Shown: one piece after another, positions 19,194 through 45,305 of the stretch
How positions within the stretch are numbered: the first letter of the stretch is position 1
Layout of the letters: every line of letters starts with the position of its first letter
Sequence record: PP496439.1
Direction: 5' to 3' (one strand)
Length of the DNA stretch: 64,000 nucleotides
Made by a program: the position numbers and the translations under genes
The notes under the pieces: generated by a model
Databases searched by the model: none
The model's input: only the letters and a program-made list of their open reading frames with translations
What the model was told of the DNA's origin: nothing

Positions 19194-19670
19194 ATGAAGA
19201 GTATGATTCGCCGCAAAGATGGGTTTTACACGGAGTTGTTAGCCGGTGCAAAAGACCCTGTTGCCCTGTCCAAGACTGCATTCAACCGTGGACTGACCCG
19301 GATCGTTGCATCTATTACGAGCAGTGTTAAGCTGCGGTACGTAGTAGATTCCGAAACCGGTGATGCGGAATACCGGGTACGAGTGAAGTTCCAGAAAAGC
19401 CAGATGACCCGCAAGGGTACTCCGGCTATCAAGGTGGGAAGGGTACTGGTTCCCGTTGATCTCGACAGCATTGCAGTGCATTGCACGTGTCAGGACTTTC
19501 GATTCACCTGGTACACCTATTTGAAGAACTCGGGGCACGCTGCCGGTTGGTTCAAGCAGGTGGAGTTGAAAGGGTCGGGCCGCACTCGGGAAGCTGACCA
19601 TGCAGGTTGCTGCAAACACGTCGCCGGTGTACTGGCAATGGTTGAGCAGAACGTTATCGTCAAGCTGTGA
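19194..19670 (+). CDS. SWIM zinc-finger protein (start corrected to MKSMIRR)
   Basis: VHCTCQDF ... CCKHV (CxC...CxH); AAGGA RBS. Confidence 0.75.
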   Translation: MKSMIRRKDGFYTELLAGAKDPVALSKTAFNRGLTRIVASITSSVKLRYVVDSETGDAEYRVRVKFQKSQMTRKGTPAIKVGRVLVPVDLDSIAVHCTCQDFRFTWYTYLKNSGHAAGWFKQVELKGSGRTREADHAGCCKHVAGVLAMVEQNVIVKL

Positions 19671-19757: not shown

Positions 19758-22544
19758 TTAGGCAAAGTCTTTCTGTGCCAGCACCAATGGTACGCCGACA
19801 GTATTCAGTGCTATCTGGGTGAACTCCTTCAATTCTGATCTGGTCAGCTTCCGGCTCAGCATCACCCCATCGTGCTCTTGTGCCACTACGATGTCTTTGT
19901 GTCGCATGTTGAACTCTATCATCACCGCTTGCTCCATACCGCAGGTGATGAAGTGCAGCAGCTTCGACTTCTCCTTTTGTGTCGTCCACCCATTCAGCAT
20001 CTTGTCCGTATAGAAGAAGGCCACTGACCCCAGCGCATTGCGAACGCTCACTGCGCTGGCGGTAGCATTGTCTGGATCAAGTCCAGCATCCTTGATTGAT
20101 CTGGACAGCGACTTGTACAGGAAGTAGTTCTGCTTGGCGATCAGGTCTCGATTGACCGGCAGCTTGACGTGTTCAGTTACCTTGTAGTCAGGGTGCGCAA
20201 GGATCATGCTGGGCAATGCCTGCATCGTCCTAATCACGGGGAAGATCAACCGGTTGGTGGTGTAGATCAAAGCGATTGCCAGTTCCATCATCTTAATCTT
20301 GAGGGCTTGCACGTGGCTCTCATTCAACTCCAGTTCAATCGGCGCAACCAGACCACGGATCAGTTTGTCTATGGTGTCGGGCACCACGGAAGATTTCAGG
20401 ATGGACTCATGCGATGTCTTGAGGCTGGACCCGTACATGACGGACAGGAACATCAGCTTGCAGACTCCATCGATAACCCGGATGAACTCCCTCTCCTTGC
20501 GCCACGTTTGACCCATCGTCTGCCCCGCGCTTTTCCATACCTGATGCAGCGCCAGTCGGTCATTCCATCTTGACTCACTTCCAGACCACTTCGGTGCGCC
20601 GTATACCCCAGCTCTCCATGGGTTCCGTACCATGACCAGCGCCGACTCCAGCAGTCCTTTGAATCCAGAATCCTCCATCTCAGTCAGCACATGATCCGTC
20701 CACGTCTTGGATTCGTACATTCCGAAGATGGTCAACGCACTATCCACGTCCCGGTCCGTGAGAAACACCTTCCCGTATTCGTCTATCGTCTGGACCAGTT
20801 CCTTGCGATACTTCTTGACCAGCCCACCGATCAGCATCGGGTGGCAAGACTTGACATCGTAGTTGACGTACCCACTCTTGGTGAGGATCACCTGCTTGAG
20901 TTGGTTGGGCAGTGAACCAAAGCCCACCGGGGAGTTTATCCGGGGCGAGCGCAAGGTGGTGAAGTGATGTGCACGGTGCATTACTATCTGGTTGTGGCGG
21001 TCGCTGCTTCCTTGCTGACACCCCAAGTTCTCCGGGTTGATCATGCGGGCCAGCGTACGGAAGGCGCCGGAGGATATGGCATCACCTGACGTGTGGTGCA
21101 TCCAGCTCAGCTCCGCAAGCAGGTCGTTGACGGGTAAGCGCACACTCTTGGTGGACAACATGCGTATGTATGCCTTCACATTGACCGGAACAACTGGCCG
21201 GGTGGACAGGTTTATGTTGTCGCTGATCTCCTTGTACGTCGGGTTGTTCACCACACAAGATTGCACCATGGAGACACGGCGTAACATCGTGCACGCCTTG
21301 ATCGGCACGTTCTTATCATGGAACATGTACAGCTTGCCCGGCTGGCCGGTCAGGTTATCGTTCGCCACCAGAGACTCACTGTAGGGCAGCTGAGAACTGA
21401 ATACCATGACAGCCTGCCCTCGTTCCGCGAACGCGTAGATCGCATTGGGCAGTACCCGGTTGCTACCCTTCAGATTGGTTAGCCAGCGGCCCAGCGGTTT
21501 AACGTCACGAGGCCGGCCCATCAAACGCCCATGCAGGTAGGCATCAACCTTATCCATGTACGAGTCAACGAACTGGGTGACCACAGGACCAGGTTCGAAC
21601 GTGAACGTCTTGTGCTTCCAGTAATCTGCTTCCGTGGTTACGGCCATCAGCCCCATGGTCTCCAGCACAGCGCGCACGGTATCCCAGTGATACGTCATCT
21701 GACCTTTCTTCGATCCTTCGATGTTCCGCCAGTTGATCAGATTGTTGAACCGTTTTTCACCTTGATGCGAGCCGAGCCCGTAGCCTTCCTTGACCTGATC
21801 CTTCTTGATCGCGAACTGGGTATCGTGGCTATGATCCAGATCAACGTGAAGGAACCGGGAAACAGACCGAGCGTGGTTCAGTTCCATGGGGAACGCCAGC
21901 TTGTTGGTCAGGTCCTTGGGGTTGAACGCAGGGTTCCATTGAAAGCCGTCCTTCGAGGTTCCCTTGTGTACGGCGGACACTAGATGCCGGGCCATTGAGT
22001 CGCGGGAGTCGAAGTGGCCTTTGTCGTTCACCTTATCCAGCAGCATGGGATATGCCACGACAAGGCGGGCGATCAGGAAGGCGAAGCAGTAGGCAGCAGA
22101 CGGACCGGGCGCACAGTTGCGCTCCGCCATCTTCTGGAGGAAGGTTTCGTATTGATCAAGGATGAAGTAGCCCAGACCGGGGGTGACCGCTACCGGCAGG
22201 CCGACGACGCGGCTGTCCAGCCAGCTTTTGCCGCTAGGGTACAGGTTATGCTTGGGGTTCAGCGAAGGTTCAACCACCATCATCCGCACATAGGGGACGT
22301 AGGACTGCACCCATTCAACGTTGGATTGATCTTTAGCTTCGGGGAAGTCACGGGTTACCTTTCCCACTTTGGCAATGAGATCAGTATTGAAGCGCCCTAC
22401 ATCCTTTACCTCAGGGGCCAGTGCGGGGTTTAGTCGAGCCGTAGCCTTGATGATGGGTATTTGGTCATACACGGGATACAAGTCTAGGGGCTTGGACAGT
22501 ATGCCTGCATATTCCTTTTCCGAGAGTGGGGTATAGTCAGCCAT
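19758..22544 (-). CDS. Divergent family-A/T7-RNAP-superfamily polymerase-like protein
   Basis: C-terminal motif A YDVKSCHP, motif B KLMFLSVMYG (K-x7-YG), motif C QEHDGVML; no recognisable exonuclease motifs. Confidence 0.65.
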   Translation of the reverse strand: MADYTPLSEKEYAGILSKPLDLYPVYDQIPIIKATARLNPALAPEVKDVGRFNTDLIAKVGKVTRDFPEAKDQSNVEWVQSYVPYVRMMVVEPSLNPKHNLYPSGKSWLDSRVVGLPVAVTPGLGYFILDQYETFLQKMAERNCAPGPSAAYCFAFLIARLVVAYPMLLDKVNDKGHFDSRDSMARHLVSAVHKGTSKDGFQWNPAFNPKDLTNKLAFPMELNHARSVSRFLHVDLDHSHDTQFAIKKDQVKEGYGLGSHQGEKRFNNLINWRNIEGSKKGQMTYHWDTVRAVLETMGLMAVTTEADYWKHKTFTFEPGPVVTQFVDSYMDKVDAYLHGRLMGRPRDVKPLGRWLTNLKGSNRVLPNAIYAFAERGQAVMVFSSQLPYSESLVANDNLTGQPGKLYMFHDKNVPIKACTMLRRVSMVQSCVVNNPTYKEISDNINLSTRPVVPVNVKAYIRMLSTKSVRLPVNDLLAELSWMHHTSGDAISSGAFRTLARMINPENLGCQQGSSDRHNQIVMHRAHHFTTLRSPRINSPVGFGSLPNQLKQVILTKSGYVNYDVKSCHPMLIGGLVKKYRKELVQTIDEYGKVFLTDRDVDSALTIFGMYESKTWTDHVLTEMEDSGFKGLLESALVMVRNPWRAGVYGAPKWSGSESRWNDRLALHQVWKSAGQTMGQTWRKEREFIRVIDGVCKLMFLSVMYGSSLKTSHESILKSSVVPDTIDKLIRGLVAPIELELNESHVQALKIKMMELAIALIYTTNRLIFPVIRTMQALPSMILAHPDYKVTEHVKLPVNRDLIAKQNYFLYKSLSRSIKDAGLDPDNATASAVSVRNALGSVAFFYTDKMLNGWTTQKEKSKLLHFITCGMEQAVMIEFNMRHKDIVVAQEHDGVMLSRKLTRSELKEFTQIALNTVGVPLVLAQKDFA

Positions 22545-23317
22545 TGGATAGCTCGCGTATTACCGGAGTGAATGGAATTGGACGTTATCAGCCCATTTAC
22601 CAGACTATATACAGAGTATCTTATGGGGGTTAAAAAGGACCATCTTGCAATTATTTGGGTCATTAATTCCCTTCCAGGCCATAAACCTCTATCTGTGGAT
22701 ACGGGGGTAGTTAGCCCTAGATACATCCCTATTACCTGTGTATATTGCCCATGTAGACTCTATTCCCCTATCGGGAAGTATAACCTCGAAAAAGGTTCCT
22801 AGCTTGCATGGGCTGGCCCACCCACCCCGTGGCCCACCCGACCGCCCGGTTAAGGCCATACCTAGGGATTCCTTTCTCCCAGAGGGACCCCCAGCTGCCC
22901 ATCCTTCCCCTGCTCCTTCCTTTCCTTCATCATCTACACCCACCCAGCTATTGACTTACCATCTAGTGATCCTCCTTCCTCCAGCTTCTACATAGGCAGT
23001 TAGCTTCCCCATGCCTCTAAGCTCCTCCGCTTCATCATGCACTTATGCTCTGTAGTACTGATTCCCCACATGCCCGTGACTTATGCTCTGGTGTCAGTAT
23101 TCCCAGCCTCCCAGGTGAAAAGGGTGTCCATGCGCTGGGGAGTTGTCCGGGGAATAGCGCCCGTGAATAGGGCTTCCAGGCGTGCGATATGGGGAGTTTT
23201 TCGGGGATGGATGAGTCAGTATGGCGGGGAATGGGGAATGAAGCGCCTGCGAGCTTGTAGGAGCCCATGGTTATTGACTGGATATGCGGGACTGGGGCGG
23301 GGTTTCCTGCGGAGGTG
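22545..23317. other. Long non-coding region with C-to-G skew switch and repeats; candidate replication origin
   Basis: No credible ORF; C/T-rich then G-rich halves; repeats ACTTATGCTCTG x2 and TGGGGAGTT(G/T)T(C/T)CGGGGA x2. Confidence 0.4.
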
Positions 23318-23351
23318 AAAAAGCCCGCACGGCTTGGGACCGATACGGGCT
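23318..23351 (-). terminator. Terminator
   Basis: AAAAAGCCCG...CGGGCT. Confidence 0.6.
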
Positions 23352-23357
23352 CTGGTA

Positions 23358-24801: not shown

Positions 24802-25026
24802 TTACTCTTGGCGCAGTTTAGCGTTGAGTGTGGCGGTCCCTCTGCTGAGAATTTTCACTCGATCAACGTGGTCTAGACCTTGCTCCACCCGACTGAGTGA
24901 CTTGGGGTCTATGTCGATCAGGGTCGCTAACTGGCCGGAGCTTACGCCAGCCTTGATACGCAGCGCACGCAGTGCAGCACCATGGGCAATCTGACGCATG
25001 CGGGCTGGGGTTTGGATAGATGGCAT
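24802..25026 (-). CDS. XRE/Cro-C1 family helix-turn-helix protein
   Basis: LRALRIKAGVSSGQLATLIDIDPKSLSRVEQG. Confidence 0.85.
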   Translation of the reverse strand: MPSIQTPARMRQIAHGAALRALRIKAGVSSGQLATLIDIDPKSLSRVEQGLDHVDRVKILSRGTATLNAKLRQE

Positions 25027-33143: not shown

Positions 33144-33206
33144 GAGCGTATAGCAATCGAATGCGTGGAATTAGCCCTTAACGGCGTCCCCACTAGTGGA
33201 GAACAC

Positions 33207-34685
33207 ATGAAATCTGTAGCCGTTGACTACCAAAAGATAGCCAAGGAATGCCAGTGCACCGAGCTGCCTTCCAAGGTAAGAGTTACTCGTGCACGGGTCT
33301 ATCCAAACTTGAGGACGTGCCTACTCTTCCTCAAGTACGATGCCAAAGGTGAACTGGTACAAGCCGAGATCACTGCGCCGTACGACACGTCCACCGAGCC
33401 AAAGGTGAGGGTGCTCAAACATCCTGACAAGAAGTCCGACTTCCTTTCATTATATAGGGCGCTGATCCGCCACCAGATCATACCCGAGTCTATTCCGAAG
33501 AAAGGTAACGGGATTGCACCAACGCTGGAGGTCATCGGCACACTGGTGAGCCTGCTGCCGGAACGGGATGTCGAAACCTTCCGTACGCTGACCCCGGCCA
33601 TCCAGACTGGCAGCGTCATGTACGTCCCGCTGGTCACGTCCCGGCCAATGCCCATGGTGCAACACTGGATACCTGTTGACCAGCATTCAGAGCTGGGCAT
33701 GATCGAGCTGGTCGATACGGATAGCAAGCCTTTCCTTAATCAGTGGGTCAACAGGTTGAGCAACACCGCCACTGGTTATGTGATCTACACCCCCGAAGGC
33801 TCACACGGTCAGGAACTAGCCTGCTTCCGGGTGCCCAATGTGCAAGGGGAGGAACTGTGTGTGGTCAAGAAGGTTGACTTCACCCTGACTGTTGCTCGCA
33901 CGCTCAAGCCGGTACTGACTGTATCCACCAAGAGTACTCGGGCAGTGTCCCGCATTCCCCTACCCCACTATCTGATGCTGCGCAATCACCACATAAAGGT
34001 GGGCACGGTTATTTCCCTGCGTCGTAACGACCGAGGTGGGTTGGTGTACCATGAGACGGTGGCCGAGGAAGGCATGACGCCCCTGCCACTGTGCCCACAC
34101 TGCCACAGTGGCTCTGTGCTGAGAGGTAGTAGCAATGACGTGTACTGCAATAACGATTCATGCCGAGGCCTAGCCATCGTGCGACTTCGCTACATCTTGA
34201 ACAACAAGCTGGACGTCAAGTACCTGAGCGACAATAAGGTAACAGCGCTGATCAATGACAAGCAGGACCTGTTCAGCTTGCTTAAGACACCGACTCACCT
34301 ATTGCGGCACAGAGCGGGCTTCGGTGCACGTACGGTGGATGCGCTGGAAGAGAAGCTGAACACTATCGCCGGTCTTCCACTGCACACGCTGGCCGAGATG
34401 TCCTGCGCTTTCTACAACGTGGGTGTGCCCCCGCTGGATGAGATGGTGTTCAAGAAGATCTTTTCCGTTATGTCGATTGACTACCTGAAAGCACTGCCCT
34501 CCACCGGTAAGATGTACAGCCAGTTGCTCGACATCGAAGGTATCCGCAACAACCGCGCAGTGGCTTTCCTTGCTGGCTGGCCTGCATTTCAACAGTGGAT
34601 GATAGACCTGAACGCTGCCCTACAGTCTCGCAGCGCAATCTCCTCCACGGTAAATAACCCGAAACAAATTCGAGGTGTGAAATGA
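33207..34685 (+). CDS. Degenerate NAD-ligase (LigA)-like protein lacking KxDG; OB, C4 zinc finger and HhH retained
   Basis: LFLKYDAKGELVQAEIT, TVARTLKPV, IKVGTVI, CPHC...YCNNDSC, AGFGARTVDAL; no KxDG or TRGDG. Confidence 0.7.
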   Translation: MKSVAVDYQKIAKECQCTELPSKVRVTRARVYPNLRTCLLFLKYDAKGELVQAEITAPYDTSTEPKVRVLKHPDKKSDFLSLYRALIRHQIIPESIPKKGNGIAPTLEVIGTLVSLLPERDVETFRTLTPAIQTGSVMYVPLVTSRPMPMVQHWIPVDQHSELGMIELVDTDSKPFLNQWVNRLSNTATGYVIYTPEGSHGQELACFRVPNVQGEELCVVKKVDFTLTVARTLKPVLTVSTKSTRAVSRIPLPHYLMLRNHHIKVGTVISLRRNDRGGLVYHETVAEEGMTPLPLCPHCHSGSVLRGSSNDVYCNNDSCRGLAIVRLRYILNNKLDVKYLSDNKVTALINDKQDLFSLLKTPTHLLRHRAGFGARTVDALEEKLNTIAGLPLHTLAEMSCAFYNVGVPPLDEMVFKKIFSVMSIDYLKALPSTGKMYSQLLDIEGIRNNRAVAFLAGWPAFQQWMIDLNAALQSRSAISSTVNNPKQIRGVK

Positions 34686-35446
34686 ACAATCAAAACAGAA
34701 CTCGTATCGCTGTGCTTGTCGGCGGCGGTCTGGACTCACATGCGTACATGGTATTGAAAGCCGACCAGCCTCAGACAGACTTCATTCATGTGGACTACGG
34801 CCAGCGGGTTGCAGTAGCCGAGAGAAACGCCGTGTTGCAAATGGCTGAGAAGCTGGGCATTGCCCGCAGCCGGGTGTACACGCTGATCTGCAACAAGAAG
34901 AATCACATGCGCAAGGTCAATGACGGTGTGGGTGTGTTGTTTGGCACCGGCCCGGTCGAGATGGACAATGCGTTTGTTAAGGGACGTAACCTGTTCCTGA
35001 TTCAGAAGGCCATCGAGCTGGGCTACGGTCACGTGCACTTGACGCTGACCCAAGAGCGTGGCCGGATGTTCCCCGATGCCGATCTGGCATTCGTCCAGCT
35101 GGTTGACAACCTGATGCACCGCAGTTATGACGTGAGGGTATCCGCCCCCTACATCATGGAAGACAAGCATCGGGTGATGTTCAAGGCGTATCGGCATTGC
35201 CCCGAGTTCCTCGATATGTCTTTCACGTGCTGGGTAGGTCCTTATGTGGAATGTGGCACGTGCCCGCACTGCGTCAAGAAGGAAAAGATTCGAGCCGAGA
35301 TGATCGTTGAGAAGATTGAATACGATCTCAGCAAGGATGAACGTGAGGCGCAGTGGGAGCAAGTCAAGGCAGGCTACGGCGACGCGTTGAAGCCCGCTGA
35401 GACCATCAACATGAACATTCAGGTTGTTGACGGAGGACTGAAATGA
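34682..35446 (+). CDS. queC: QueC-like PP-loop ATPase (copy 1)
   Basis: VLVGGGLDS, VDYGQR, FVKGRN, FPDA, TCW...CGTCPHC. Confidence 0.8.
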   Translation: MNNQNRTRIAVLVGGGLDSHAYMVLKADQPQTDFIHVDYGQRVAVAERNAVLQMAEKLGIARSRVYTLICNKKNHMRKVNDGVGVLFGTGPVEMDNAFVKGRNLFLIQKAIELGYGHVHLTLTQERGRMFPDADLAFVQLVDNLMHRSYDVRVSAPYIMEDKHRVMFKAYRHCPEFLDMSFTCWVGPYVECGTCPHCVKKEKIRAEMIVEKIEYDLSKDEREAQWEQVKAGYGDALKPAETINMNIQVVDGGLK

Positions 35447-36153
35447 ACAAGTTCTTAGGTTGGTTCAAGCGTCTGCTGGATAAGAAGCACAAGTCGATCA
35501 CGATGACGTTGACCGACGCCGAAGGTAAGTTGGTCACCATCCACATACCGCAAGGTGCGGGTGTCGAATACACGCTCTCGAAGTCGGGCACCCACTTGAA
35601 CGTCTCAGTTAAAGACGACGTCTTCATGTTGCGCACGAATGGCGCTGGAGTCGGTGGCAGTGGAAGTTCCAAGCCCGGTCTCAACGGTGGCCCCGGCCAT
35701 ACACCTATCCCCCGGTCCCCAAGCTTCACGGGCGCTGGTACGCCGAACTACGGTCACGCAGGCGACCCGCCTGTTGGTGCTCAAGCTTCGTTCCCTATCG
35801 GCGCCCGAGCAACTGTTTCTGGTGGTGGGCGCGTTGGTGGCCTGTCAGGTGGAAGCGCAAACGGCACAATGGCTGGTGGTGGAGATGGCTTCGTTCCCTC
35901 TCCAATCCGTAGCTCTGATCGAGCTTACCTGATTAGAGGTTTGTATTACGTCATCACGACGAAGAAGATAACGGGAGAGCAATACCCGATCCATGAGCTT
36001 CTGCATTGGGGTAAGAAGTCAATCGAACTCATGGGCAAGTTCTCCACCGTCCGAGACGCTATCGACGAACTCAAATTGAAGACGGGTATCCCATTCGAAG
36101 ACCTGACGGACTATCAGGTTGATTCCCTTCCCAAACGACTGTGCAAGCCTTGA
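35443..36153 (+). CDS. Hypothetical protein with Gly/Pro-rich central region
   Basis: ATGA coupling; ~85-aa G/P/S-rich tract. Confidence 0.55.
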   Translation: MNKFLGWFKRLLDKKHKSITMTLTDAEGKLVTIHIPQGAGVEYTLSKSGTHLNVSVKDDVFMLRTNGAGVGGSGSSKPGLNGGPGHTPIPRSPSFTGAGTPNYGHAGDPPVGAQASFPIGARATVSGGGRVGGLSGGSANGTMAGGGDGFVPSPIRSSDRAYLIRGLYYVITTKKITGEQYPIHELLHWGKKSIELMGKFSTVRDAIDELKLKTGIPFEDLTDYQVDSLPKRLCKP

Positions 36154-36191
36154 TCGGGTAAATGGTCCGTAACTAATCCGGAGACACCAGC

Positions 36192-37010
36192 ATGACCACT
36201 GCGCCCCCAAAGATTATCGTTGCATTCAGCGCCGGTACAGATTCAACTACAGCGGCCTACTACTATCGCAAGCTCGGCTATCAGGTAACGCTGGCCGTGT
36301 TCGATGACGGCGCATGCAACGATCCACTTGGCCCTCTGTACGATCCGAACAAGCCGAAGGACTTGACCAACTTCTCGGATGAGTTCTACGATTACGTACG
36401 GATTCACCAAGAGCACACGGAAGGCCATCTTCAGTTCGACTTCGTGGAGATTCGTTATCCGCAACTCGCATTGCTGGAAGCCAACAAGACAGCCAAGCCC
36501 GGTCGGGACAATGCAGCAGCAGCAGAGGCTGACGGCTTGGGCTTCTGGGTCGGCTTCAAGGGCCTGATGGCAATGTTGCTGATGAGCCACGGCGCCGCCA
36601 ATGGTTACGAGGCAGTAGTCTTCGGCCACATGCCGTACAACAACCATTACGAAGATGAGCTGCCCCAGAACTTCGAGCTGCTGCGTCAGTACATGGTTAC
36701 GGCCTATGGCAGCCGAGTGGAAATTCCTCAGATCTACCACCCATTCTATCGACCGAATTTCGATACCAAGGAAAAGGTTATTGAGCTGGCTCAGGCAATC
36801 GGCGTGCCCTTGCGAGATACCTATTCGTGCCGCCGAGGTGAAGTAGAAACCCGAGGTATCCTCCTGCCACTTCTGCGTGGCGGTAACTCCAACTACGTGA
36901 GCCCCACCTACCGTTGGAAGCATTGTGGTACGTGTGAGAACTGTGTCGAACGCAAGCGAGCCTTCGCGGCGCTGGGCATGAAAGATCCTGCCCCTTATAT
37001 GGAACATTGA
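36192..37010 (+). CDS. queC: QueC-like PP-loop ATPase (copy 2, divergent)
   Basis: VAFSAGTDST, TYSC...HCGTCENCVERKRAF. Confidence 0.75.
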   Translation: MTTAPPKIIVAFSAGTDSTTAAYYYRKLGYQVTLAVFDDGACNDPLGPLYDPNKPKDLTNFSDEFYDYVRIHQEHTEGHLQFDFVEIRYPQLALLEANKTAKPGRDNAAAAEADGLGFWVGFKGLMAMLLMSHGAANGYEAVVFGHMPYNNHYEDELPQNFELLRQYMVTAYGSRVEIPQIYHPFYRPNFDTKEKVIELAQAIGVPLRDTYSCRRGEVETRGILLPLLRGGNSNYVSPTYRWKHCGTCENCVERKRAFAALGMKDPAPYMEH

Positions 37011-37011
37011 T

Positions 37012-38028
37012 ATGGCCCTTTCAATCTGGCCGCTGACCGAAGGTGAACTCGGTCAGGGCCTCGTCAACGAACTGAATCGTACCAGCAAGGCGCTGGTGAA
37101 CCGGAGTATGTGGTCTTTGCCATTGCTCCGGCGTTTGTTTTATCGGCGCACCGAGATTGGTGTCCCGGAGCTACTCCACGTCTGTACCAGCATTCATCGG
37201 GGCAAGACTTACTTCTGCCTGTTGGTGAACTTCCGAGATGTGGTGATGGGCAACCCCGAGCAATACGGATGGGACCTAGCTGGCCGGTGGTTGTTCTACG
37301 ATGTGGATCTGCTGGATACCCCGGAGTTTAAACAGGTAAACGCGGCTATTCGTAAGGTGGCTACGGTCAACACGGTTACCTACGGTCAAGCATTCGTTCC
37401 GGATGAAGGTGGTATGGGGGAGGAGCACTGGATCAAGAAACTGAAAGGTAACTACCGCCCCCACATCTTCGGCGAAAAGTCAAAACAGGTTATCGTCAGT
37501 CAGACCTGCGGACACGCGGCTACTCACGTTCTGACCGAGGCAGTGATGTCATTCGGTATCCAGCGCGCTGAGAGATTTCTCGCGGAAGGTCAGTCGGATG
37601 TCATGCCGGAGTTGTATGACCTACCCATGCAGCTAGCCGGTCTAGGCTCGATCCCTGGAACCCGGATTGGCACCGTGTCGCTCACCTGCCGGGATACCCG
37701 TGCGCTGATCGGTACCCTGTCGTTCTACGTTGTGGCAGGCTTGGGTCACAGTGATATCTTGTATATGCACGAGATGCTGATTGATCCGGATCCGAAGTGG
37801 AAGCCTCTATCGGTGGCCGTCAACTTGCACATTCAGGCAATCATGTATGTGCGCTATCTAAACAGCCGATCTGATCGGGCTTCGGACTTGGTTATCAACC
37901 TCGGATTCAACTTGGACGAGAAGTACAACACATACAAAGAGGTGTTCCGTCCGAACAAGTCCGAAATGGAAATCTATACCGGCATGCACACCGAGCCCGG
38001 CGTCCCACTGTCCTGTTTCAAGGGGTAA
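37012..38028 (+). CDS. Putative GNAT/FemABX-like transferase
   Basis: C-terminal INLGFNLDEKYNTYKEVF resembles the C-terminus of its paralogs. Confidence 0.45.
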   Translation: MALSIWPLTEGELGQGLVNELNRTSKALVNRSMWSLPLLRRLFYRRTEIGVPELLHVCTSIHRGKTYFCLLVNFRDVVMGNPEQYGWDLAGRWLFYDVDLLDTPEFKQVNAAIRKVATVNTVTYGQAFVPDEGGMGEEHWIKKLKGNYRPHIFGEKSKQVIVSQTCGHAATHVLTEAVMSFGIQRAERFLAEGQSDVMPELYDLPMQLAGLGSIPGTRIGTVSLTCRDTRALIGTLSFYVVAGLGHSDILYMHEMLIDPDPKWKPLSVAVNLHIQAIMYVRYLNSRSDRASDLVINLGFNLDEKYNTYKEVFRPNKSEMEIYTGMHTEPGVPLSCFKG

Positions 38029-38031
38029 GAC

Positions 38032-39033
38032 ATGTACACTCCGTATTCCCAAAACAGTCTGATGCAATCGATCCCGTTGGATGACCAAGGTACATTCGCC
38101 CATCCGCCGTATACGATGGAAGGAGAGTTAACCGACGTGTGGACGAACCCCAACCTATATGGGTTCGTCAGCCTGTTGAACGGCCAGAGCAATAGCCGGG
38201 CCTATCGAGACTGGATGACCACCCACAATCTTCCAGCACTGTTCCTCGGTCCGCATCATGAAGACAACTTCTGGTTTGAATTCAGCACTGGTCTCTATTC
38301 CAACTGCACGCTGGATTACAACGAGATCAACGTCCAAGGCAACCTGCAGGACTTCCTTGGGAGATTGACGTCATCTCGCCGTCGCTCCGTGCTCAAGGCA
38401 AAGGAAACGGATACAATGATCCACAAGGCAGGCTCGGTAGCCAACTTCAACCTGTATCATCCGGTGGAGGGTAGGCTGTATAGTCTTACCGCGATTCACG
38501 AACGCCGGGTGATGAAAGATATTTCAGAGTTTATCGAATCGAAACTTTGGAGTATGAAGCAGACGCCTACTGACCTCACGTACGGGGCATTCACCACTCT
38601 GATGGACTACATCCGGTTGAAGCAGCGAGAGGATACGCCACTCGGCCACCTACTGCGCGCCGTTCATCTATTGGTCATTCGAGACGAACGTTCAGGGTTT
38701 ATCGTGTCGGTACACCTGGTGGCGATCAACACGTTGAAAGATGATCGCCATAATCCTATCAAGACCTACTTGCACTCCTTTGCGCGCATCACTGTTCTCC
38801 CTGCACGTATCGCCCTACTCGCGTTGATCAAGGTGGTTCAAGAGTTAAACGTCACTAGTCAGTACGCGTCCCGTACACTGGCGAAGATTGACTATCTTGA
38901 CGTGAGCAACGTGGTGCTGTCCGAGCGAGAGCAGTACAAGTCGGACTTCTTCACCGGCAAATGCCAAGTGCGTGCGTGGGCATCCCCGGCGCTGCTGGAA
39001 CGACAGTTACCTTTCGTTACGCCGATCCCGTAA
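38032..39033 (+). CDS. Putative GNAT/FemABX-like transferase
   Basis: QDFLGRLTSSRRRSVLKA helix; C-terminal YLDVS...EQYKSDF. Confidence 0.5.
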   Translation: MYTPYSQNSLMQSIPLDDQGTFAHPPYTMEGELTDVWTNPNLYGFVSLLNGQSNSRAYRDWMTTHNLPALFLGPHHEDNFWFEFSTGLYSNCTLDYNEINVQGNLQDFLGRLTSSRRRSVLKAKETDTMIHKAGSVANFNLYHPVEGRLYSLTAIHERRVMKDISEFIESKLWSMKQTPTDLTYGAFTTLMDYIRLKQREDTPLGHLLRAVHLLVIRDERSGFIVSVHLVAINTLKDDRHNPIKTYLHSFARITVLPARIALLALIKVVQELNVTSQYASRTLAKIDYLDVSNVVLSEREQYKSDFFTGKCQVRAWASPALLERQLPFVTPIP

Positions 39034-39087
39034 CTCTGTAAATGATGGGAACAGCCCCACCATCACTTCATCTCTAGGGTAGTTCCC

Positions 39088-40140
39088 ATGCAAGACTTCG
39101 ATAAGATAATGATCGATAGTAGTTTGACATCCAATCTGGTGTACGCAGGGTTGGGTAACTTGATCACGCCCCGCGCACTTGACCTGCTGATCGAACATCA
39201 GGCTGCACTGGAAAACGTATACGCCAATCTGGAAACAGCGTATCAGATTACCCCACCCTTCCCCTGTGAAGCTGCATTCAATTACCCTGACAAAGATCCT
39301 GTGCTGGTCGCCGACTATCTGAATGCTACTCCCGCCATCCGTTGCGGAGAGCTGGCTGGATTCGAGGCAAAGCCCGGCAGTTACTACCATGCGCCCGCCG
39401 CTGGTATCTCCCCGGAACATCGCATCGACGTACGTGGTATGTCTTTGCGTGAGTTCGACCACTATCTGGTTGAGCGTAAGGAAGTATCCCGTATCACTAC
39501 CAATCTGGTGGCCGACAAGTTCCGCTGTGAGACGCATGTGTACAAAGTGGATGAAGATCATATCCTGATCCATGACGCCGAACGAGTTGGGATCAGCCAG
39601 ACGGACTTCCGCCGCATGTGGGCGCAGACCCGCCGCCGGGAAATCGCTGAAAACTATCTGCAGTACATGCCCATCGAAGACTCCGCCAAGGATGATCAGG
39701 TGGTGCGACTGATCAACGAAGACGTAGCACGGGTGTTAGCCCAGAACGTCGACTACGACCGCATGATTCCGCCCGAGCTGATCTTCGATGGTCAGGGCAA
39801 GCCGGTGCTGACCGTGCTGAAAGATTGCAACGCCAAGGTGTTGGGCATTGGTGTGTACGTCATCTACAAGTCAGCTGACCCAGAGCATGACAGCGAACTG
39901 CACTGGCGTGGCGCTTTCTACGATCACGAAGATCCTCGCGTAGCATCCATGGGCATTGAACACGCTCTGGTTGCCAGCGCACTGCACACAGCGTACGCCT
40001 GCAACGCGGTCCTCTATCTGACCAAGGCACCTAAGTCCGTGTGTGACGCATGGAAGACGGAAGTGCACCAAGGTTACGGGCTGGTCCGTAATGCGATGCC
40101 GGAACTGTCTGACACCCCTTACATTCTGGCTATCCAGTAA
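39088..40140 (+). CDS. Putative aminoacyl-transferase-like GNAT (FemABX/Arg-tRNA transferase-like)
   Basis: DFRRMWAQTRRREIAEN; AFYDHEDPRVASMG...VLYL resembles the FYD...SLG...YL pattern. Confidence 0.45.
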   Translation: MQDFDKIMIDSSLTSNLVYAGLGNLITPRALDLLIEHQAALENVYANLETAYQITPPFPCEAAFNYPDKDPVLVADYLNATPAIRCGELAGFEAKPGSYYHAPAAGISPEHRIDVRGMSLREFDHYLVERKEVSRITTNLVADKFRCETHVYKVDEDHILIHDAERVGISQTDFRRMWAQTRRREIAENYLQYMPIEDSAKDDQVVRLINEDVARVLAQNVDYDRMIPPELIFDGQGKPVLTVLKDCNAKVLGIGVYVIYKSADPEHDSELHWRGAFYDHEDPRVASMGIEHALVASALHTAYACNAVLYLTKAPKSVCDAWKTEVHQGYGLVRNAMPELSDTPYILAIQ

Positions 40141-40173
40141 ATAGCCGGTAACTCCATCCATTGAGGTACTTCC

Positions 40174-42258
40174 ATGAAATCCGTGAACCCCATCTTCAAA
40201 CACGTTCCCCAGTTCGACTGGCCTGTCATTCCCCGTGCGCAGTGGGAAGAGATCGTCAAGGGAAAAGAGCATGTGATGTTCGACTCCTTCTCGCAGCTCG
40301 CTCAAGTGTTGGCTATCCCGGTGAGCAGTTACCAGTTCTACTTCGAAGATGGGTCCACGTTGTTCGCCGGTCCCGAAGCAACCTTCACCGCCGCGCCGTA
40401 CCCGCTGTATCAGGACCTTGAATTCGTCCTGACCCCTGACGAGACGTTGGTGCCGGGTCTTGCACTGGATACCAAACCGTGGGGCCTGTACACCGACGAA
40501 TGGGTGGACAACTACGAAGGTGCGGACAAGGAAGACATCGGCAACAAGACCGGGTTCGAATTCATTCCGCTGTCGGACGCCTTGAAACTGGTGGTCCTCA
40601 ACACGGAGACCATGCAGCTCCAGTACACTGCAATCGAGAGCTTCACGTACGACGGCGTGACTTACGTATACCTGCTGGCCGATGGCGTGTGCTGGGTACT
40701 GGCGGGCAAGTCCGGTGGTCTGGTTGCCAGCGAGCATGACAAAGGTGCTGCGTTCATCATGGTGTCCCATCCCGAGTTCGCCGGGTGCAGCGTAGACAAC
40801 ATGTACCCAAGTGAGTTCGGTGAAGCGGAAGCGACGTTCTACGTTCAAGACGAGGAACACAATTACCTGGACGCGGCTAACCGCATCTTCGAGGAAGCCA
40901 AGGACGTAGGCGCTGGCACTTTCCTGACCATTGAGACCGGGGATGGACTGCCGACGGCACTGGCCTACAACCTGCGTTACAGTGACGTGGCCCACGTTAA
41001 CCTGCCGATGCACAACATCCACCAGTTCACGTCTCTTCACGTACGACTGGGCGAGACGCCTAACTTCTCCGAGGCCCCGGAAGCGTGCCGCATGAAAGAG
41101 GTGATGGAGTACCTGGCGGACCCCGAGTCCCCGGTAGACCATTACTGGTCTGCCATCATGGTACTGGAGAAGAACTTCCCCGGTTTCGCCGACGCCCTGA
41201 AAGACTCCAGTGTCCCAACCCGTGACATCGTGCACTCCAAACAGGCGTTCAGCTTGGAGATCGATCGCCAGTTCGGCAAGGAAGTGGCAAGCAAGATCGG
41301 CCTGAACACTGGCGTATTCGCCCAAGTGAAAGACCGTGATGAGTGGCTGACCCGTCAAGACGATTTTCCTACCGACAAGGTGGCCGTCAAGTACAACACC
41401 AAACACTTCATCGGCATCTTCGACAAGGACGAGGTATCGAATTCCATCAACATGTGGCTGGCCGGTCAACCCGGAGAGTCGCTGATGATCGAAGAGTACT
41501 TCGGTGAGGGCAATCAGGAATTCAACCTGTGCTATGTGATCAACGAAGAGTTCGTGCAGCCGACGCTGTTCCTGTGCGAAGTCAACAAGATCCTCGGTAA
41601 TGACACCGGCGGCAAAGGTGGCAACACGCTGGCCTGCCATGATGCTCGTATTAACAAGTACCCTGAGTTCTTTGAGCCGGTCAATGCTGCGCTTGCTAAC
41701 CTGCATGAGCACGTGGAAGGTGTGAAGGGCTGGGTTGACCTGAGCTTCATGGTCCGCGACGGCATCCCTTACTTCACAGAGTGGTGCATTCGAATTGGCT
41801 GCTCCAACAACGCCACCATCGTGCGCCAGATGGAGACCCCGCTCGACGTTCTGCTGACCAACGTGGTTAACAAGGTGCATACCGAGCTGTCTTGGAAGCA
41901 CTCCATGTCTGTCAGCGTGGACATCTACAGCATGCCGCTGTCCGCAGGCAATGATGCCAACATGCAGTTCACCGAGTCGCTGACCACGCCGGTCGAGATG
42001 GTGTCCCCGCTCAATCTGGAACTGGCGGCGGAGAGTTTCTTCGACCCGATTGATTCGGCCTGGAACGCGGTGTACGACGGCTACATTGTCGAGGCGTACA
42101 ACCGATATGGCACCGTCTCGGGGTATTCCACCAACTGGAACTTCGCCTGCAATGCGGCGTACAATCACTTGAAAGATCAGTCGGTGTTGTACGGGGCATA
42201 CCGCGAAGCGCCTGCCCACCACGACCCACTGACTCTGTTCCCTTTCCTCAAGGCGTAA
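40174..42258 (+). CDS. ATP-grasp ligase, PurD-like C-terminal half, with a large unknown N-terminus
   Basis: VAVKYN, LMIEEYFGEGNQEF, GNDTGGKGG, MVRDGIPYFTEWCIRIG. Confidence 0.7.
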   Translation: MKSVNPIFKHVPQFDWPVIPRAQWEEIVKGKEHVMFDSFSQLAQVLAIPVSSYQFYFEDGSTLFAGPEATFTAAPYPLYQDLEFVLTPDETLVPGLALDTKPWGLYTDEWVDNYEGADKEDIGNKTGFEFIPLSDALKLVVLNTETMQLQYTAIESFTYDGVTYVYLLADGVCWVLAGKSGGLVASEHDKGAAFIMVSHPEFAGCSVDNMYPSEFGEAEATFYVQDEEHNYLDAANRIFEEAKDVGAGTFLTIETGDGLPTALAYNLRYSDVAHVNLPMHNIHQFTSLHVRLGETPNFSEAPEACRMKEVMEYLADPESPVDHYWSAIMVLEKNFPGFADALKDSSVPTRDIVHSKQAFSLEIDRQFGKEVASKIGLNTGVFAQVKDRDEWLTRQDDFPTDKVAVKYNTKHFIGIFDKDEVSNSINMWLAGQPGESLMIEEYFGEGNQEFNLCYVINEEFVQPTLFLCEVNKILGNDTGGKGGNTLACHDARINKYPEFFEPVNAALANLHEHVEGVKGWVDLSFMVRDGIPYFTEWCIRIGCSNNATIVRQMETPLDVLLTNVVNKVHTELSWKHSMSVSVDIYSMPLSAGNDANMQFTESLTTPVEMVSPLNLELAAESFFDPIDSAWNAVYDGYIVEAYNRYGTVSGYSTNWNFACNAAYNHLKDQSVLYGAYREAPAHHDPLTLFPFLKA

Positions 42259-42261
42259 TCC

Positions 42262-43425
42262 ATGAGCACTCCATTCCAAGAGTTCACCCTAGAAGGGTGG
42301 ATTCGCTACATGAGAGATGAAAGCATCATCTGGCGCGCGTACGCTGATGGTCATCCGGATAAGGTCGAGTTCAGCCCGGAGTGGCGTGACGAGATGTATC
42401 GGTTGATGGTGCAGTTCAAAGATCTGCTGCCGATGTCGTTTTCCAATCCGGTGTACGGCTTCACTGAAGGTTGGCTGGAAGGGCTCGGACTCCAGCCCTT
42501 TTATGGCGATGATCCGTTCAATCCGATGGTGCAACCGCTTAGCCACCCTCTGGTGCATGTGGGGCTTCCGTTTACTCTGAGCGAGCTGACGGCGGGCGTA
42601 TGGGACTGTCAGTCCCTGAGCGCTCACCTGGAGCGTCCGCTGCTGGTCGATACATTCGAACCGATCCCAGTGCCATCTATTAGCCTGGACGCTTACAAAG
42701 CCGTCCTGACCGTACGGGACCGGGAAGAGATCGTGATGAGTGCGGGAACCCCGGTGAACTACTTCCTCTGGTTGAATAGTCCGATCACCGAACTCAAAGA
42801 CGACTTCGACGTTTATCTGGCCAGCCTGACCAAGAAGCGCCGCTACAAAGTGAAGCAGGCACTGGCGACAGTGGGCACCGAAGAGAACCCGGCTATCAGC
42901 GTCAGTACTGGATCTCGTTTCGGCGAAGGGTTGTTGTCCGATCAGGTGAACAGCATCCTCGCGACTTTCGAAGATCCGGTGGACATCGAGTGCATGCTTC
43001 TTCAGCTGCTGTTCGGGGTGGCAACCTGCAATACCCATCCGCATCTTGTCGATCTGGTTTGTGCAGACCAGCAGTTGGGGATCTTCATCAAGCGCAACGG
43101 CCACACGATGAATTTCCTCTACAACCGTGACCCGGACAACCGCGCTGACTCAGGCATCAACCTGCTGACCCAGTACGTGCGCCATCTGCACATGAACCGC
43201 CCGGAAGGTGTGATGTACGTGGACCCGACATGTCGATATCGGCCTGACGAGGACAGTATGAACACCTACAAGCGGGTGATCACCAACGAGAACCGGTATC
43301 ACCCAATGCCGTTCGTCTCGGCTGACCCTGCGCATATTGAAGGTGTGATTACCCCGGCGTTCATTGCAGGTCATTGGCAGATGTCGGCGTCCAATGGCCC
43401 GGCCAATCCTGAGATGATGGAGTAA
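42262..43425 (+). CDS. Putative GNAT/FemABX-like transferase (Acetyltransf_6-like)
   Basis: DDFDVYLASLTKKRRYKVKQAL; C-terminal YVDPT...NTYKRVI. Confidence 0.6.
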   Translation: MSTPFQEFTLEGWIRYMRDESIIWRAYADGHPDKVEFSPEWRDEMYRLMVQFKDLLPMSFSNPVYGFTEGWLEGLGLQPFYGDDPFNPMVQPLSHPLVHVGLPFTLSELTAGVWDCQSLSAHLERPLLVDTFEPIPVPSISLDAYKAVLTVRDREEIVMSAGTPVNYFLWLNSPITELKDDFDVYLASLTKKRRYKVKQALATVGTEENPAISVSTGSRFGEGLLSDQVNSILATFEDPVDIECMLLQLLFGVATCNTHPHLVDLVCADQQLGIFIKRNGHTMNFLYNRDPDNRADSGINLLTQYVRHLHMNRPEGVMYVDPTCRYRPDEDSMNTYKRVITNENRYHPMPFVSADPAHIEGVITPAFIAGHWQMSASNGPANPEMME

Positions 43426-43427
43426 CC

Positions 43428-44375
43428 ATGGCAAAGCACAAGGTCAAAAGGTTGGAAATCAACCACATCTACGACTTCTACCCGTTGTATCAGGTGATGT
43501 ACGGGCGTGGCATGGAGACCAAAGCGTTCGAGGTCTCCAAGTTCGCCAAGATGGTGCTGGACTTCGAAGCATCAACCAGTACTCGCCGGAAGTGGGACGT
43601 GCTGGAACCTTTCAGCGGTATCAGCGAGCATGAACACTTCTTCGCTGCGACCGGCCTGAACATCGAGCATTACACCGGCATGGACATCGTGGTTCCAGAT
43701 GGAGCCAAAAACGTCATTCAAGGCGACATCATCACCGACACCCTTCCGTTTCACGTCAACGCGGTGTTCGCCTTCTACTACAGCTTGCAGAATGTACGGG
43801 ACGCCAAGACTGGCATGCACACGCGGGAAAAGCTGGTGGAGTTCTTCGACAACATCCTCGGCCATCTGCAAGTCAATGCGAACAAGAGCCGTATGCCCGC
43901 AGTGTTCGCTTTCCACCTTGACCAGCCTGAAGACCCTAATTACTATCTGACGTCCCGTGCCGACGTTGGAGGTGAACAGTCATGGACCGCACCCGCGTGT
44001 GGTCTGCTGGGGCAGTGGGTCAAGTGCAAACCGACTGACACTCTGGAAGTGAAGTGCAATCTGGACACCTGGTACAACCGTGTGCAGTGCACCGCGTACG
44101 ATCAGGCGGAGGATATCCAGATTCTGGTAAATGGGCGAGTAGTGGCGACCGTTGAGATCGAACAGCCGTTCACTCATCGGGTCTGGACCGAGCATGAGGT
44201 GATCGACATCCTGCGGGGTCTGGACTACAATCTGCACTTCCACATGTACAACGGCACCATCTCCAATTACGACTTCTTGATGACCCGTTTGGAAGACAAG
44301 CCCGTTCCCGGCTATGAAGAGGCTAATACTAATCAGATGACAACTGATATGCTGGTTGTCGTTAATCCGAGGTAA
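43428..44375 (+). CDS. Class I SAM-dependent methyltransferase-like protein
   Basis: VLEPFSG, YTGMDI, IQGDIIT. Confidence 0.65.
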   Translation: MAKHKVKRLEINHIYDFYPLYQVMYGRGMETKAFEVSKFAKMVLDFEASTSTRRKWDVLEPFSGISEHEHFFAATGLNIEHYTGMDIVVPDGAKNVIQGDIITDTLPFHVNAVFAFYYSLQNVRDAKTGMHTREKLVEFFDNILGHLQVNANKSRMPAVFAFHLDQPEDPNYYLTSRADVGGEQSWTAPACGLLGQWVKCKPTDTLEVKCNLDTWYNRVQCTAYDQAEDIQILVNGRVVATVEIEQPFTHRVWTEHEVIDILRGLDYNLHFHMYNGTISNYDFLMTRLEDKPVPGYEEANTNQMTTDMLVVVNPR

Positions 44376-44377
44376 TA

Positions 44378-45295
44378 ATGGCTAAGCCCAAGATCCCTAC
44401 ACGAACCATCCCCACGTTGTACCAAGACTGGGGGTTGTACAGCGCCATCTGCGAACTGCCGCAGGAGACGATGCTGATGATGTCGCGCTTCGTGGCAGAC
44501 CGGACCATCGAACATGCCGAGCGCCATGACCTGGAAAGTGTGGCGATCATGGAGCCCTTTAGCGGGCCGATCCCGTATTACGAGCCAGACATCCGAAGCT
44601 TCCTGACTCGCGCCCGTGTTGACCTGGATACGTACGATCATGTCGAGTACCTTGATCATGGTGGATTGTCGGAAGACAACAATATCATCATCGGTGACAT
44701 CACCACCATCGACCTGAAACAGAAATACGACGTCATCTACGGCAGTTACGGCAGCTTGGCCTGCCTGCTGCTGGATCACACGCACAACAAAGCTTACGAG
44801 AAGTCGCACGCGGCGCTGGTCAACATTCGCGAGCACCTGAAACCCAACGGCATCTTCGTCCTGAACGCCAACGGATCCAGCGAAAGCCTGCTGAATAACC
44901 TGTTGAACTCCGATGAGCCGGATCAAGAGATTCGCGTCCGTCCGGGATCGCAGTTGGGCAAGGCGTTCCGAATCAAACCAGACAGTAACGCGCTGCTTCG
45001 TTTCTCCTACAACGTGGAGTACGACCGACGCACCACCTGCACCATGTGCCACTACAGCGATATGGTGCTGTCTGTAAATGGAGTTGACATCCAGCGCTGG
45101 GAGGTGGAATCCCCGACGTATCTTGCGCCGCTGGATGAACCCGAACTAATTCGAATGGCAGGTATGGCTGGTTTCAATCTGGAAAACACTGAGTTCTACG
45201 GATTGGACACCACCGGTTATCCTGCCTTCTTCAAAATGGATACGGTCTGCGACGGGTCATGGTCACCCGCCGAGTTCGTAGTCTTTCGCACCTAA
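44378..45295 (+). CDS. Class I SAM-dependent methyltransferase
   Basis: IMEPFSG, IIGDITTIDLKQKYDVI, IREHLKPNGIFV. Confidence 0.8.
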   Translation: MAKPKIPTRTIPTLYQDWGLYSAICELPQETMLMMSRFVADRTIEHAERHDLESVAIMEPFSGPIPYYEPDIRSFLTRARVDLDTYDHVEYLDHGGLSEDNNIIIGDITTIDLKQKYDVIYGSYGSLACLLLDHTHNKAYEKSHAALVNIREHLKPNGIFVLNANGSSESLLNNLLNSDEPDQEIRVRPGSQLGKAFRIKPDSNALLRFSYNVEYDRRTTCTMCHYSDMVLSVNGVDIQRWEVESPTYLAPLDEPELIRMAGMAGFNLENTEFYGLDTTGYPAFFKMDTVCDGSWSPAEFVVFRT

Positions 45296-45305
45296 CGAGG
45301 TTCCT

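Follow-up and report, generated by a model that had tools for sequence, protein, structure and literature searches.

Results

The Amme1_00168 locus and its polymerase-like motifs

We sought to characterize the gene Amme1_00168 (protein WYW01560.1) of the Pseudomonas putida jumbo phage vB_PpuM-Amme-1, which lies in a 64,000-nucleotide stretch of DNA (the window) corresponding to bases 124001-188000 of record PP496439.1. Phage Amme-1 is a jumbo myovirus that originates from Estonia, has P. putida as its host and carries a genome of 202,198 bp. It has been described as a representative of a new genus cluster, G3 (10.1101/2024.03.26.586772). Amme1_00168 is found on the minus strand at window positions 19758-22544, begins with ATG and encodes 928 aa that were deposited as a 'hypothetical protein', and that we describe here as a divergent, exonuclease-less, family-A-polymerase-like protein. 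An original prediction, made from the letters of the DNA and a list of open reading frames (ORFs), had assigned this ORF to the superfamily of family-A DNA polymerases (DNAPs) and T7-type RNA polymerases (RNAPs), with three polymerase motifs behind some 550 aa of unassigned sequence and a long non-coding region at its side. The ORF proved identical to the deposited gene. The ~550 aa of unassigned N-terminal sequence are real, and so is the non-coding region, which comprises 813 nt upstream of the gene (22545-23357).

The three motifs lie where they had been placed. Motif A, YDVKSCHP, comprises residues 562-569 (20838-20861). Read from one residue earlier, as N561-Y-D563-V-K-S-C-H568-P569, it spans 20838-20864 and contains D563, the counterpart of the catalytic Asp D705 of Escherichia coli DNA polymerase I (Pol I), and H568 at the position of the steric gate (Pol I E710). 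Motif B on the O-helix, KLMFLSVMYG, comprises residues 696-705 (20430-20459; 20427-20459 when written as K696-LMFLSVM-Y704-G705-S706), and K696, L700 and Y704-G705 correspond to K758, F762 and Y766-G767 of Pol I. The residue four positions before the motif B Lys (K-4), normally Arg, is D692, as the original prediction had it. Motif C, E890-H891-D892-G893 (19866-19877), places H891-D892 on Pol I H881-D882. A counterpart of the Pol I block TGRLSS..PNLQNIP was found at R535-SPRINSPVGFGSLPNQL-K550 (20895-20942), with R535 on R668 and P546 on P680, and a helix before motif C, H864-FITCGM-E871 (19932-19955), pairs H864 with N845, C868 with Q849 (H784 in T7 RNAP) and G869 with G850. The protein ends in K925-D-F927-A928 (19761-19772). 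All of these features are encoded on the minus strand, and the C-terminal ~400 aa hold the palm and fingers motifs, namely D563, D892, K696, Y704 and the primer-terminus Arg R535.

A divergent family in one group of jumbo phages

The target protein alone gave no match in searches of Pfam, PHROGs, NCBIfam, PADLOC or the Protein Data Bank (PDB), and single-sequence searches of Pfam and PHROGs, as well as phmmer against PDB, recognized nothing in the target, in its homolog from phage Peetri or in two halves of the protein. The family-A model PF00476 was not matched by any of the seven family members scanned, even at E-values up to 10, and PF00940, the T7-type RNAP model, was not matched in Pfam scans of the target and the other members scanned. 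A word-indexed search of 5.8 billion proteins returned only the cluster to which Amme1_00168 itself belongs. An exhaustive phmmer search of 1.84 billion representatives returned two clusters, its own and that of the Peetri homolog, which is 32% identical by tblastn (38% in the alignment) and keeps all three motif sites. Pattern scans of viral and metagenome contigs yielded no relatives.

Synteny provided the starting point for finding more distant homologs, because a neighbouring ATPase has relatives of 40% identity in Vibrio phages GR11A and GR7B. In GR11A, the slot equivalent to that of Amme1_00168 is empty, and a 617-aa hypothetical protein (gp66) sits directly upstream of RNase H. This protein contains the same three motifs and matched the Amme-1/Peetri pair in hhalign at the motif C block (E 0.0058). 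Searching by tblastn with the GR11A protein, and then with the homolog from Dickeya phage AD1, retrieved at least 58 further records (48 from Erwinia, 8 from Dickeya and 1 each from Yersinia and Vibrio phages), all annotated as hypothetical except for one 'putative helicase' (pEa_SNUABM_5). A weak tblastn match in Klebsiella phage N1M2 (E 2) was dismissed, as it falls in an unrelated 170-aa protein. The phages that carry the gene are jumbo phages of the Lupandier type, described around phage PaBG (PMC7412058). That description lists Pol I with uracil-DNA glycosylase (UDG) and exonuclease domains, the beta and gamma subunits of Pol III, and sigma factors, and does not list a second polymerase. 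The family is found in one large group, phages of the Lupandier type that infect Pseudomonas, Vibrio, Erwinia, Dickeya and Yersinia.

The short homologs (525-618 aa) display the Pol I signatures more clearly than the target does. The AD1 homolog reads GGRLFEVGGGFQNLP, NWDMKSSQ, RRAAKVCLYGTIFS and LEHDG, and the Erwinia and Dickeya members read GGRLFE-GGGFQNLP at the TGR..PNLQNIP block. The AD1 gene itself, AD1_214 (L021:3155-4771), is deposited with a coding sequence (CDS) start at 3719 (350 aa), and its ORF runs from ~3161 (536 aa). Since the 536-aa ORF aligns with the homologs over its full length, the annotated start appears to be too late.

Although the 15 homologs share only 14-25% identity with the target, D563, K696, E890, D892 and G893 are unchanged in them. 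Together with R535, K550, G869, E871, K925 and F927 (Amme-1 numbering), these are the residues invariant in 15 of 15 members, which makes the K-x-F at the C-terminus a constant of the family. Other positions tolerate change. The positions of Y704 and G705, eight and nine residues after the motif B Lys (K+8 and K+9), hold Tyr or Phe (Phe in many members) and Gly, Ser, Thr or Lys, respectively, and H891 of motif C is replaced by Phe in 2 members. The steric-gate position is occupied by His in Amme-1 and Peetri and by Gln in the other 13. The residue at K+4 is aromatic in 10 of the 15, being Tyr or Phe in 10 of the 13 members from outside Pseudomonas phages and L700 in Amme-1. The Pseudomonas versions (928-1010 aa) stand apart: their K+4 residue is aliphatic (Leu or Ile), they have a YGS motif, and Asp or Gln replaces the O-helix Arg. 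They are also ~400 residues longer and have an additional N-terminal domain of ~250 residues and insertions in the fingers.

Profile comparison places the family with polymerases

We compared the family with reference profiles of ten diverse T7-type RNAPs and eight family-A DNAPs. A homolog search with T7 RNAP had given only relatives of at least 74% identity, and diverse members of both groups were therefore taken from phage records instead. The DNAP core profile includes the E. coli Klenow fragment and Amme-1's own Pol A. In hhalign, the 15-member core matched the family-A DNAP core with a score of 39.5 (E 2.3e-4, probability 44%). Shuffling the columns gave null scores of 12.2 +/- 1.9, and shuffling in blocks of six columns gave 14.5 +/- 2.5 with a maximum of 21.0. 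For neither type of null did any of 40 shuffles reach 39.5 (z 10-14), and the DNAP and RNAP reference profiles, a pair known to be homologous, scored 17.7 against each other under the same conditions. The match to the T7-type RNAP core was 32.3 (E 2.5e-3), a score likewise reached by 0 of 40 shuffles. The core of the Pseudomonas pair matched the other 13 members at 37.0 (E 3.8e-4), which ties the long versions to the short ones. As single sequences, the best match of the family core was Amme-1's own Pol A (34.5, E 7e-4), followed by Klenow (30.7). In an independent hmmsearch of the family profile against all PDB sequences, DNA polymerase gamma came out on top (E 0.015), and 13 of the 19 matches were to Pol gamma, all at motif B in register. 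With the 15-member profile and the PDB search in agreement, membership in the Pol A/T7-RNAP superfamily, as originally predicted, is supported.

The alignment to the DNAP core is collinear through all of the residue pairs given above, from R535 on R668 to H891-D892 on H881-D882. In the alignment to the RNAP core, K696, Y704, G705 and S706 fall on K631, Y639, G640 and S641 of T7 RNAP and H891-D892 on H811-D812, and motif A is out of register, with D563 on L562 or unaligned (the motif A Asp of T7 RNAP is D537). Because the residues concerned are invariant across divergent homologs, and because the profile match to the family-A core is both collinear and significant, the motif pattern goes beyond chance. 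Depth of the family mattered for this result. An early hhalign comparison with the Amme-1/Peetri pair only was not significant, its best local alignment to the DNAP profile placing AQEHDG on VHDE of T7 DNAP. The DNAP-versus-RNAP positive control also failed at that stage (E 0.23), so the pair-only comparison had no power to decide. Profile-profile comparisons gave E-values of 0.01-0.6 as long as the family held only 2-12 sequences, and significance grew as members were added.

DNA polymerase or RNA polymerase

The original prediction had interpreted the protein as a single-subunit RNAP, origin primase or initiator. The RNAP and origin-primase parts of this reading were not supported. The DNAP match is the better of the two (39.5 vs 32.3), and the six landmark blocks are in register for DNAP only. 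The spacing from the conserved Arg to the motif A Asp is 28 residues in the family, compared with 37 in Pol I and 112 in T7 RNAP, and is thus DNAP-like. A small residue at the steric gate (G542 in T7 RNAP) and a Tyr at K+8 that reads the 2'-OH are traits of RNAPs, whereas the gate of this family is a bulky Gln or His. We dropped an apparent equivalence of R449 with T7 RNAP R425, which has a similar spacing to motif A, because the shorter homologs lack this inserted region and because R668 of Pol I is matched by R535. A k-mer census of the whole genome revealed no repeated phage promoter: across the 202 kb, non-coding 12-14-mers recurred at most 4-5 times, and the most frequent k-mers were coding repeats and terminators, although an enzyme using one or few sites would escape detection in such a census. 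Taken as a whole, the sequence leans to a DNAP over an RNAP.

N-terminal region and the separate replicase

The N-terminal ~500 aa (21045-22544, minus strand) are mostly lineage-specific, with no more than 258-317 aa preceding the conserved Arg in the homologs. An exonuclease signature was not detected before R535. Against a profile of the Pol I exonuclease and thumb, this part scored 13.4, within the range of the null (9.7 +/- 1.6, maximum 14.9). It contains no conserved acidic columns, and PF01612, the model of the DEDD 3'-5' exonuclease, found no match in Amme1_00168. These results support the description of the protein as exonuclease-less.

The claim that the protein is not the replicase also held. 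A standard Pol A that does have an exonuclease domain is encoded separately in Amme-1. This protein, Amme1_00229 (1085 aa), matches PF00476 with E 2.6e-38 and in addition PF01612, and corresponds to the Pol I described for the Lupandier group (PMC7412058). The genome further encodes a clamp loader, a Toprim primase, a DnaB-type helicase, UvsX, SSB, topoisomerase II and a sigma factor.

Rapid divergence within a conserved neighbourhood

Between Amme-1 and Peetri, Amme1_00168 is 32% identical, while the 18 neighbours with a match are 76-98% identical. Among the Erwinia and Dickeya phages, the gene is 43-51% identical and most neighbours are 75-90% identical. Such divergence is unexpected for a core replication enzyme and points to relaxed constraint or to conflict. 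Relative to Peetri, the gene and the proximal ~430 nt of the spacer form a hypervariable island (window 19758-22980), and no DNA match to the proximal spacer was found. Fast evolution or swapping also affects the two or three small genes directly downstream of the polymerase-like gene in the Erwinia and Dickeya phages, which are 25-61% identical or absent, and the next genes are again 85-91% identical. This stretch lies at L020 5356-6620, with equivalents in L019, L021 and L022.

RNase H and helicase genes are located near Amme1_00168. Amme1_00167 (19194-19670, plus strand, 158 aa) converges on the 3' end of Amme1_00168. It is 95% identical in Peetri, is the sole plus-strand gene within a long block of minus-strand genes, and gave no family match. 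Among the small genes upstream of the spacer, one at 24802-25023 (minus strand) encodes a 73-aa protein with an Xre-type helix-turn-helix (PF13560, E 1e-7).

The upstream spacer

A non-coding stretch precedes the gene in all 14 homolog loci examined. It measures 813 nt in Amme-1 (22545-23357, minus strand) and 655 nt in Peetri. The GR11A stretch extends over 1.1 kb, and those of the Erwinia and Dickeya phages over ~340-500 nt, with the exception of pEa_SNUABM_32, where 136 nt separate the annotated CDS. Read towards the gene on the minus strand, the Amme-1 spacer starts with the intrinsic terminator of the upstream gene cluster (GAGCCCG...CGGGCTTTTT; 23318-23353). A C-rich block (~23118-23357) is followed by a G-rich block (~22818-23117), and this arrangement (22818-23357) gives a local GC-skew switch stronger than any other in the 202-kb genome (1.50, against 1.10 for the second strongest), with the G-rich strand being the non-template strand. 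A similar switch is found upstream of the gene in Peetri and GR11A and, weaker, in phage Alexandra. The spacer also contains, on the minus strand, an 18-nt direct repeat, TCCCCG-N5-ACTCCCCA (23136-23153 and 23190-23207, 54 nt apart), a cluster of G-runs with quadruplex potential in the region of the G-rich block (~22817-22847), and a sigma-70-like promoter match (TTAACC, 18-nt spacer, TATAGT; 22604-22633) ~60 nt upstream of the start codon, which is a consensus match only.

Peetri and Amme-1 share 92% identity over the distal 377 nt of the spacer, and the proximal half has diverged together with the gene. The spacer had no match in Rfam, its RNA has no stable fold and folds no better than shuffled sequences (z +2.2), and its purine tracts are not exceptional. 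Common to the Erwinia spacers are a terminator, a block similar to a -35 element and conserved leader blocks. What was originally proposed as a candidate origin would, in those phages, rather be a terminator with a promoter-like block and a long leader.

Other observations in the genome

A 7-deazaguanine (queuosine-like) gene set with two QueC-like genes lies in the window at 33165-46541 (plus strand), among many consecutive hypothetical genes, and genes of the QueE-like and GTP cyclohydrolase types are found elsewhere in the record, outside the window (193988-197668). This gene set suggests that the DNA is modified. Also outside the window, record bases 112911-118661 encode a 1915-aa 'DNA helicase' with an SNF2-related domain (PF00176) in mid-protein and ~900 unassigned N-terminal residues.

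Discussion

We consider it somewhat better than an even bet (a probability of roughly 0.55) that Amme1_00168 belongs to an unrecognized, very divergent, exonuclease-less branch of the family-A (Pol I type) polymerases and acts as a catalytically active accessory polymerase beside the standard replicase. The retained catalytic landmarks suggest that the protein would be active. It would most likely synthesize DNA without proofreading on a specialized substrate, for example in repair, in gap filling, or where synthesis is initiated or extended at an intermediate of recombination or of an origin. Copying of the genome would not be its task. The speed at which it diverges suggests work at an interface under conflict or relaxed constraint, and the Pseudomonas versions, having gained ~400 residues, may have changed function.

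Several results weigh against this assignment. None of the curated models (Pfam, PHROGs, NCBIfam, PADLOC) recognizes any member examined. The Amme-1/Peetri pair alone does not match either polymerase family significantly (19.2, E 0.16), which means that the polymerase assignment is transitive, by way of the shorter homologs. AlphaFold2, run with 2-3 sequences in the alignment, gave a mean predicted local distance difference test (pLDDT) score of 38.7 for the full-length protein and 40.7 for residues 409-928. Foldseek searches with both low-confidence models returned helical-bundle noise. The models thus give no support for the fold. The fast evolution of the gene is unusual for a core polymerase. 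Finally, the equivalent of Pol I R754 is D692 in Amme-1 and varies in the family, and the equivalent of Pol I E883 is Gly in all 15 members. Since neither residue is kept, activity could be altered or lost.

The failure of single-sequence and curated-model searches to find a polymerase, together with E-values of 0.01-0.6 for small family samples and the low-confidence structure models, would also be expected if the family-A resemblance were a chance pattern of short motifs on an unrelated fold. We rate this as the least probable of the three main alternatives, because E improved with family depth to 2.3e-4 at z 10-14 against nulls, six blocks are collinear and in register, the invariant residues are the catalytic landmarks, and an independent HMMER search of PDB puts a family-A polymerase first. 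A second alternative accepts the polymerase-like fold and gives it a role in conflict instead of genome replication, for example in template-independent synthesis or synthesis on an unusual substrate, or in binding and blocking a host factor or defence system. The gene is indeed the most diverged in an otherwise conserved synteny, Pol I R754 and E883 are not kept, and in the Vibrio relatives the gene is missing from the equivalent slot and placed elsewhere. Prophages of P. putida are moreover known to restrict these phages strongly (10.1101/2024.03.26.586772). Against such a role, very large divergence has left the two catalytic Asp residues, the O-helix Lys and the primer-terminus Arg unchanged, which argues for retained catalysis, and PADLOC gave no match. 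The role is put forward as a candidate, and we regard it as unlikely.

Equally unlikely, in our estimate, is a single-subunit RNAP or primase that arose, as T7 RNAP did, from a Pol-A-like ancestor and transcribes or primes at a specific site, in which case the spacer could be an origin of the R-loop type. Consistent with it, the family core matches the T7-type RNAP core above nulls with motifs B and C in register, and the Amme-1 and Peetri proteins combine an aliphatic K+4 residue, like M635 of T7 RNAP, with YGS and a large N-terminal extension. The spacer is conserved alongside the gene and holds the strongest GC-skew switch of the genome, with a G-rich non-template strand, and RNase H and helicase genes are close by. 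However, the DNAP match is stronger, and only DNAP brings motif A and the TGR/PNLQNIP block into register. The Arg-to-motif-A spacing is 28 residues and not ~112, the steric gate is Gln or His and not Gly, and many members have Phe for Tyr at K+8. The 202-kb genome shows no repeated promoter and encodes a Toprim primase and a sigma factor, RNA of the spacer does not fold better than its shuffles, and the Erwinia spacers have the appearance of terminator, promoter and leader. A narrower form of this idea, in which only the enlarged Pseudomonas versions evolved independently into a single-subunit RNAP or primase from a phage Pol-A-like ancestor, perhaps with an R-loop start of replication at the C-rich/G-rich spacer, is a long shot, the least favoured of all the possibilities considered here. 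If it were true, it would represent a second, separate transition from DNAP to RNAP within family A.

A divergent family-A polymerase, the reading we prefer, has points of contact with the known enzymes. With the family-A DNAPs (Klenow, T7 gp5, Pol gamma; PF00476) the family shares the order and register of its blocks, namely a TGR..PNLQNIP-like segment, the motif A Asp, K-x7-[YF]-G, an N..QG helix and H-D, as well as the Arg-to-motif-A spacing and, in 10 of 15 members, the aromatic K+4 residue, and Pol gamma is its best PDB match. In contrast to them, it falls below every curated threshold, lacks a 3'-5' exonuclease domain, has an unrelated N-terminal domain, does not conserve R754 (Asp in Amme-1), carries Gly for E883 and Gln or His for the steric-gate Glu, evolves fast and coexists with a standard Pol A replicase. 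Pol theta, Pol nu and Taq polymerase are likewise family-A cores without an active 3'-5' exonuclease, employed in repair or specialized synthesis. Unlike the protein described here, they keep a recognizable family-A sequence and an inactive exonuclease-like domain. The T7-type RNAPs (PF00940, including mitochondrial RNAP and the N4 RNAPs) belong to the same superfamily and share motif B (K, Y, G, S) and motif C (H-D) in register. T7 RNAP is similar in overall size to the Pseudomonas versions, and the C-terminal K-x-F (KDFA-COOH) is reminiscent of its conserved C-terminal Phe-Ala. Unlike in these RNAPs, motif A is out of register, the match is weaker than to DNAPs, there is no family-conserved T/DxxGR block ~110 residues upstream, and the Amme-1 genome has no conserved promoter family. 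Amme1_00229, from the same genome, gives the best single-sequence match to the family core. Unlike this replicase, which Pfam recognizes and which has an exonuclease domain, the target is unrecognized by Pfam and lacks one. Judged from the sequences, the similarity between the two is too weak to call them recent paralogs.

Few enzymes have been studied and used as much as the family-A polymerases and their T7-RNAP offshoot, yet the branch described here is invisible to every curated model and annotated as 'hypothetical' in ~65 phage genomes. If our assignment is correct, an entire jumbo-phage group has, next to its standard replicase, a second polymerase-like enzyme that does not proofread. 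Such an enzyme could supply a compact (~525 aa) polymerase scaffold whose active site is unusual in that the steric gate is Gln or His, Gly replaces the Glu of motif C, and the O-helix Arg is not conserved. Knowledge of its substrate and role could bring to light a new accessory step of phage DNA metabolism, or a function in conflict.

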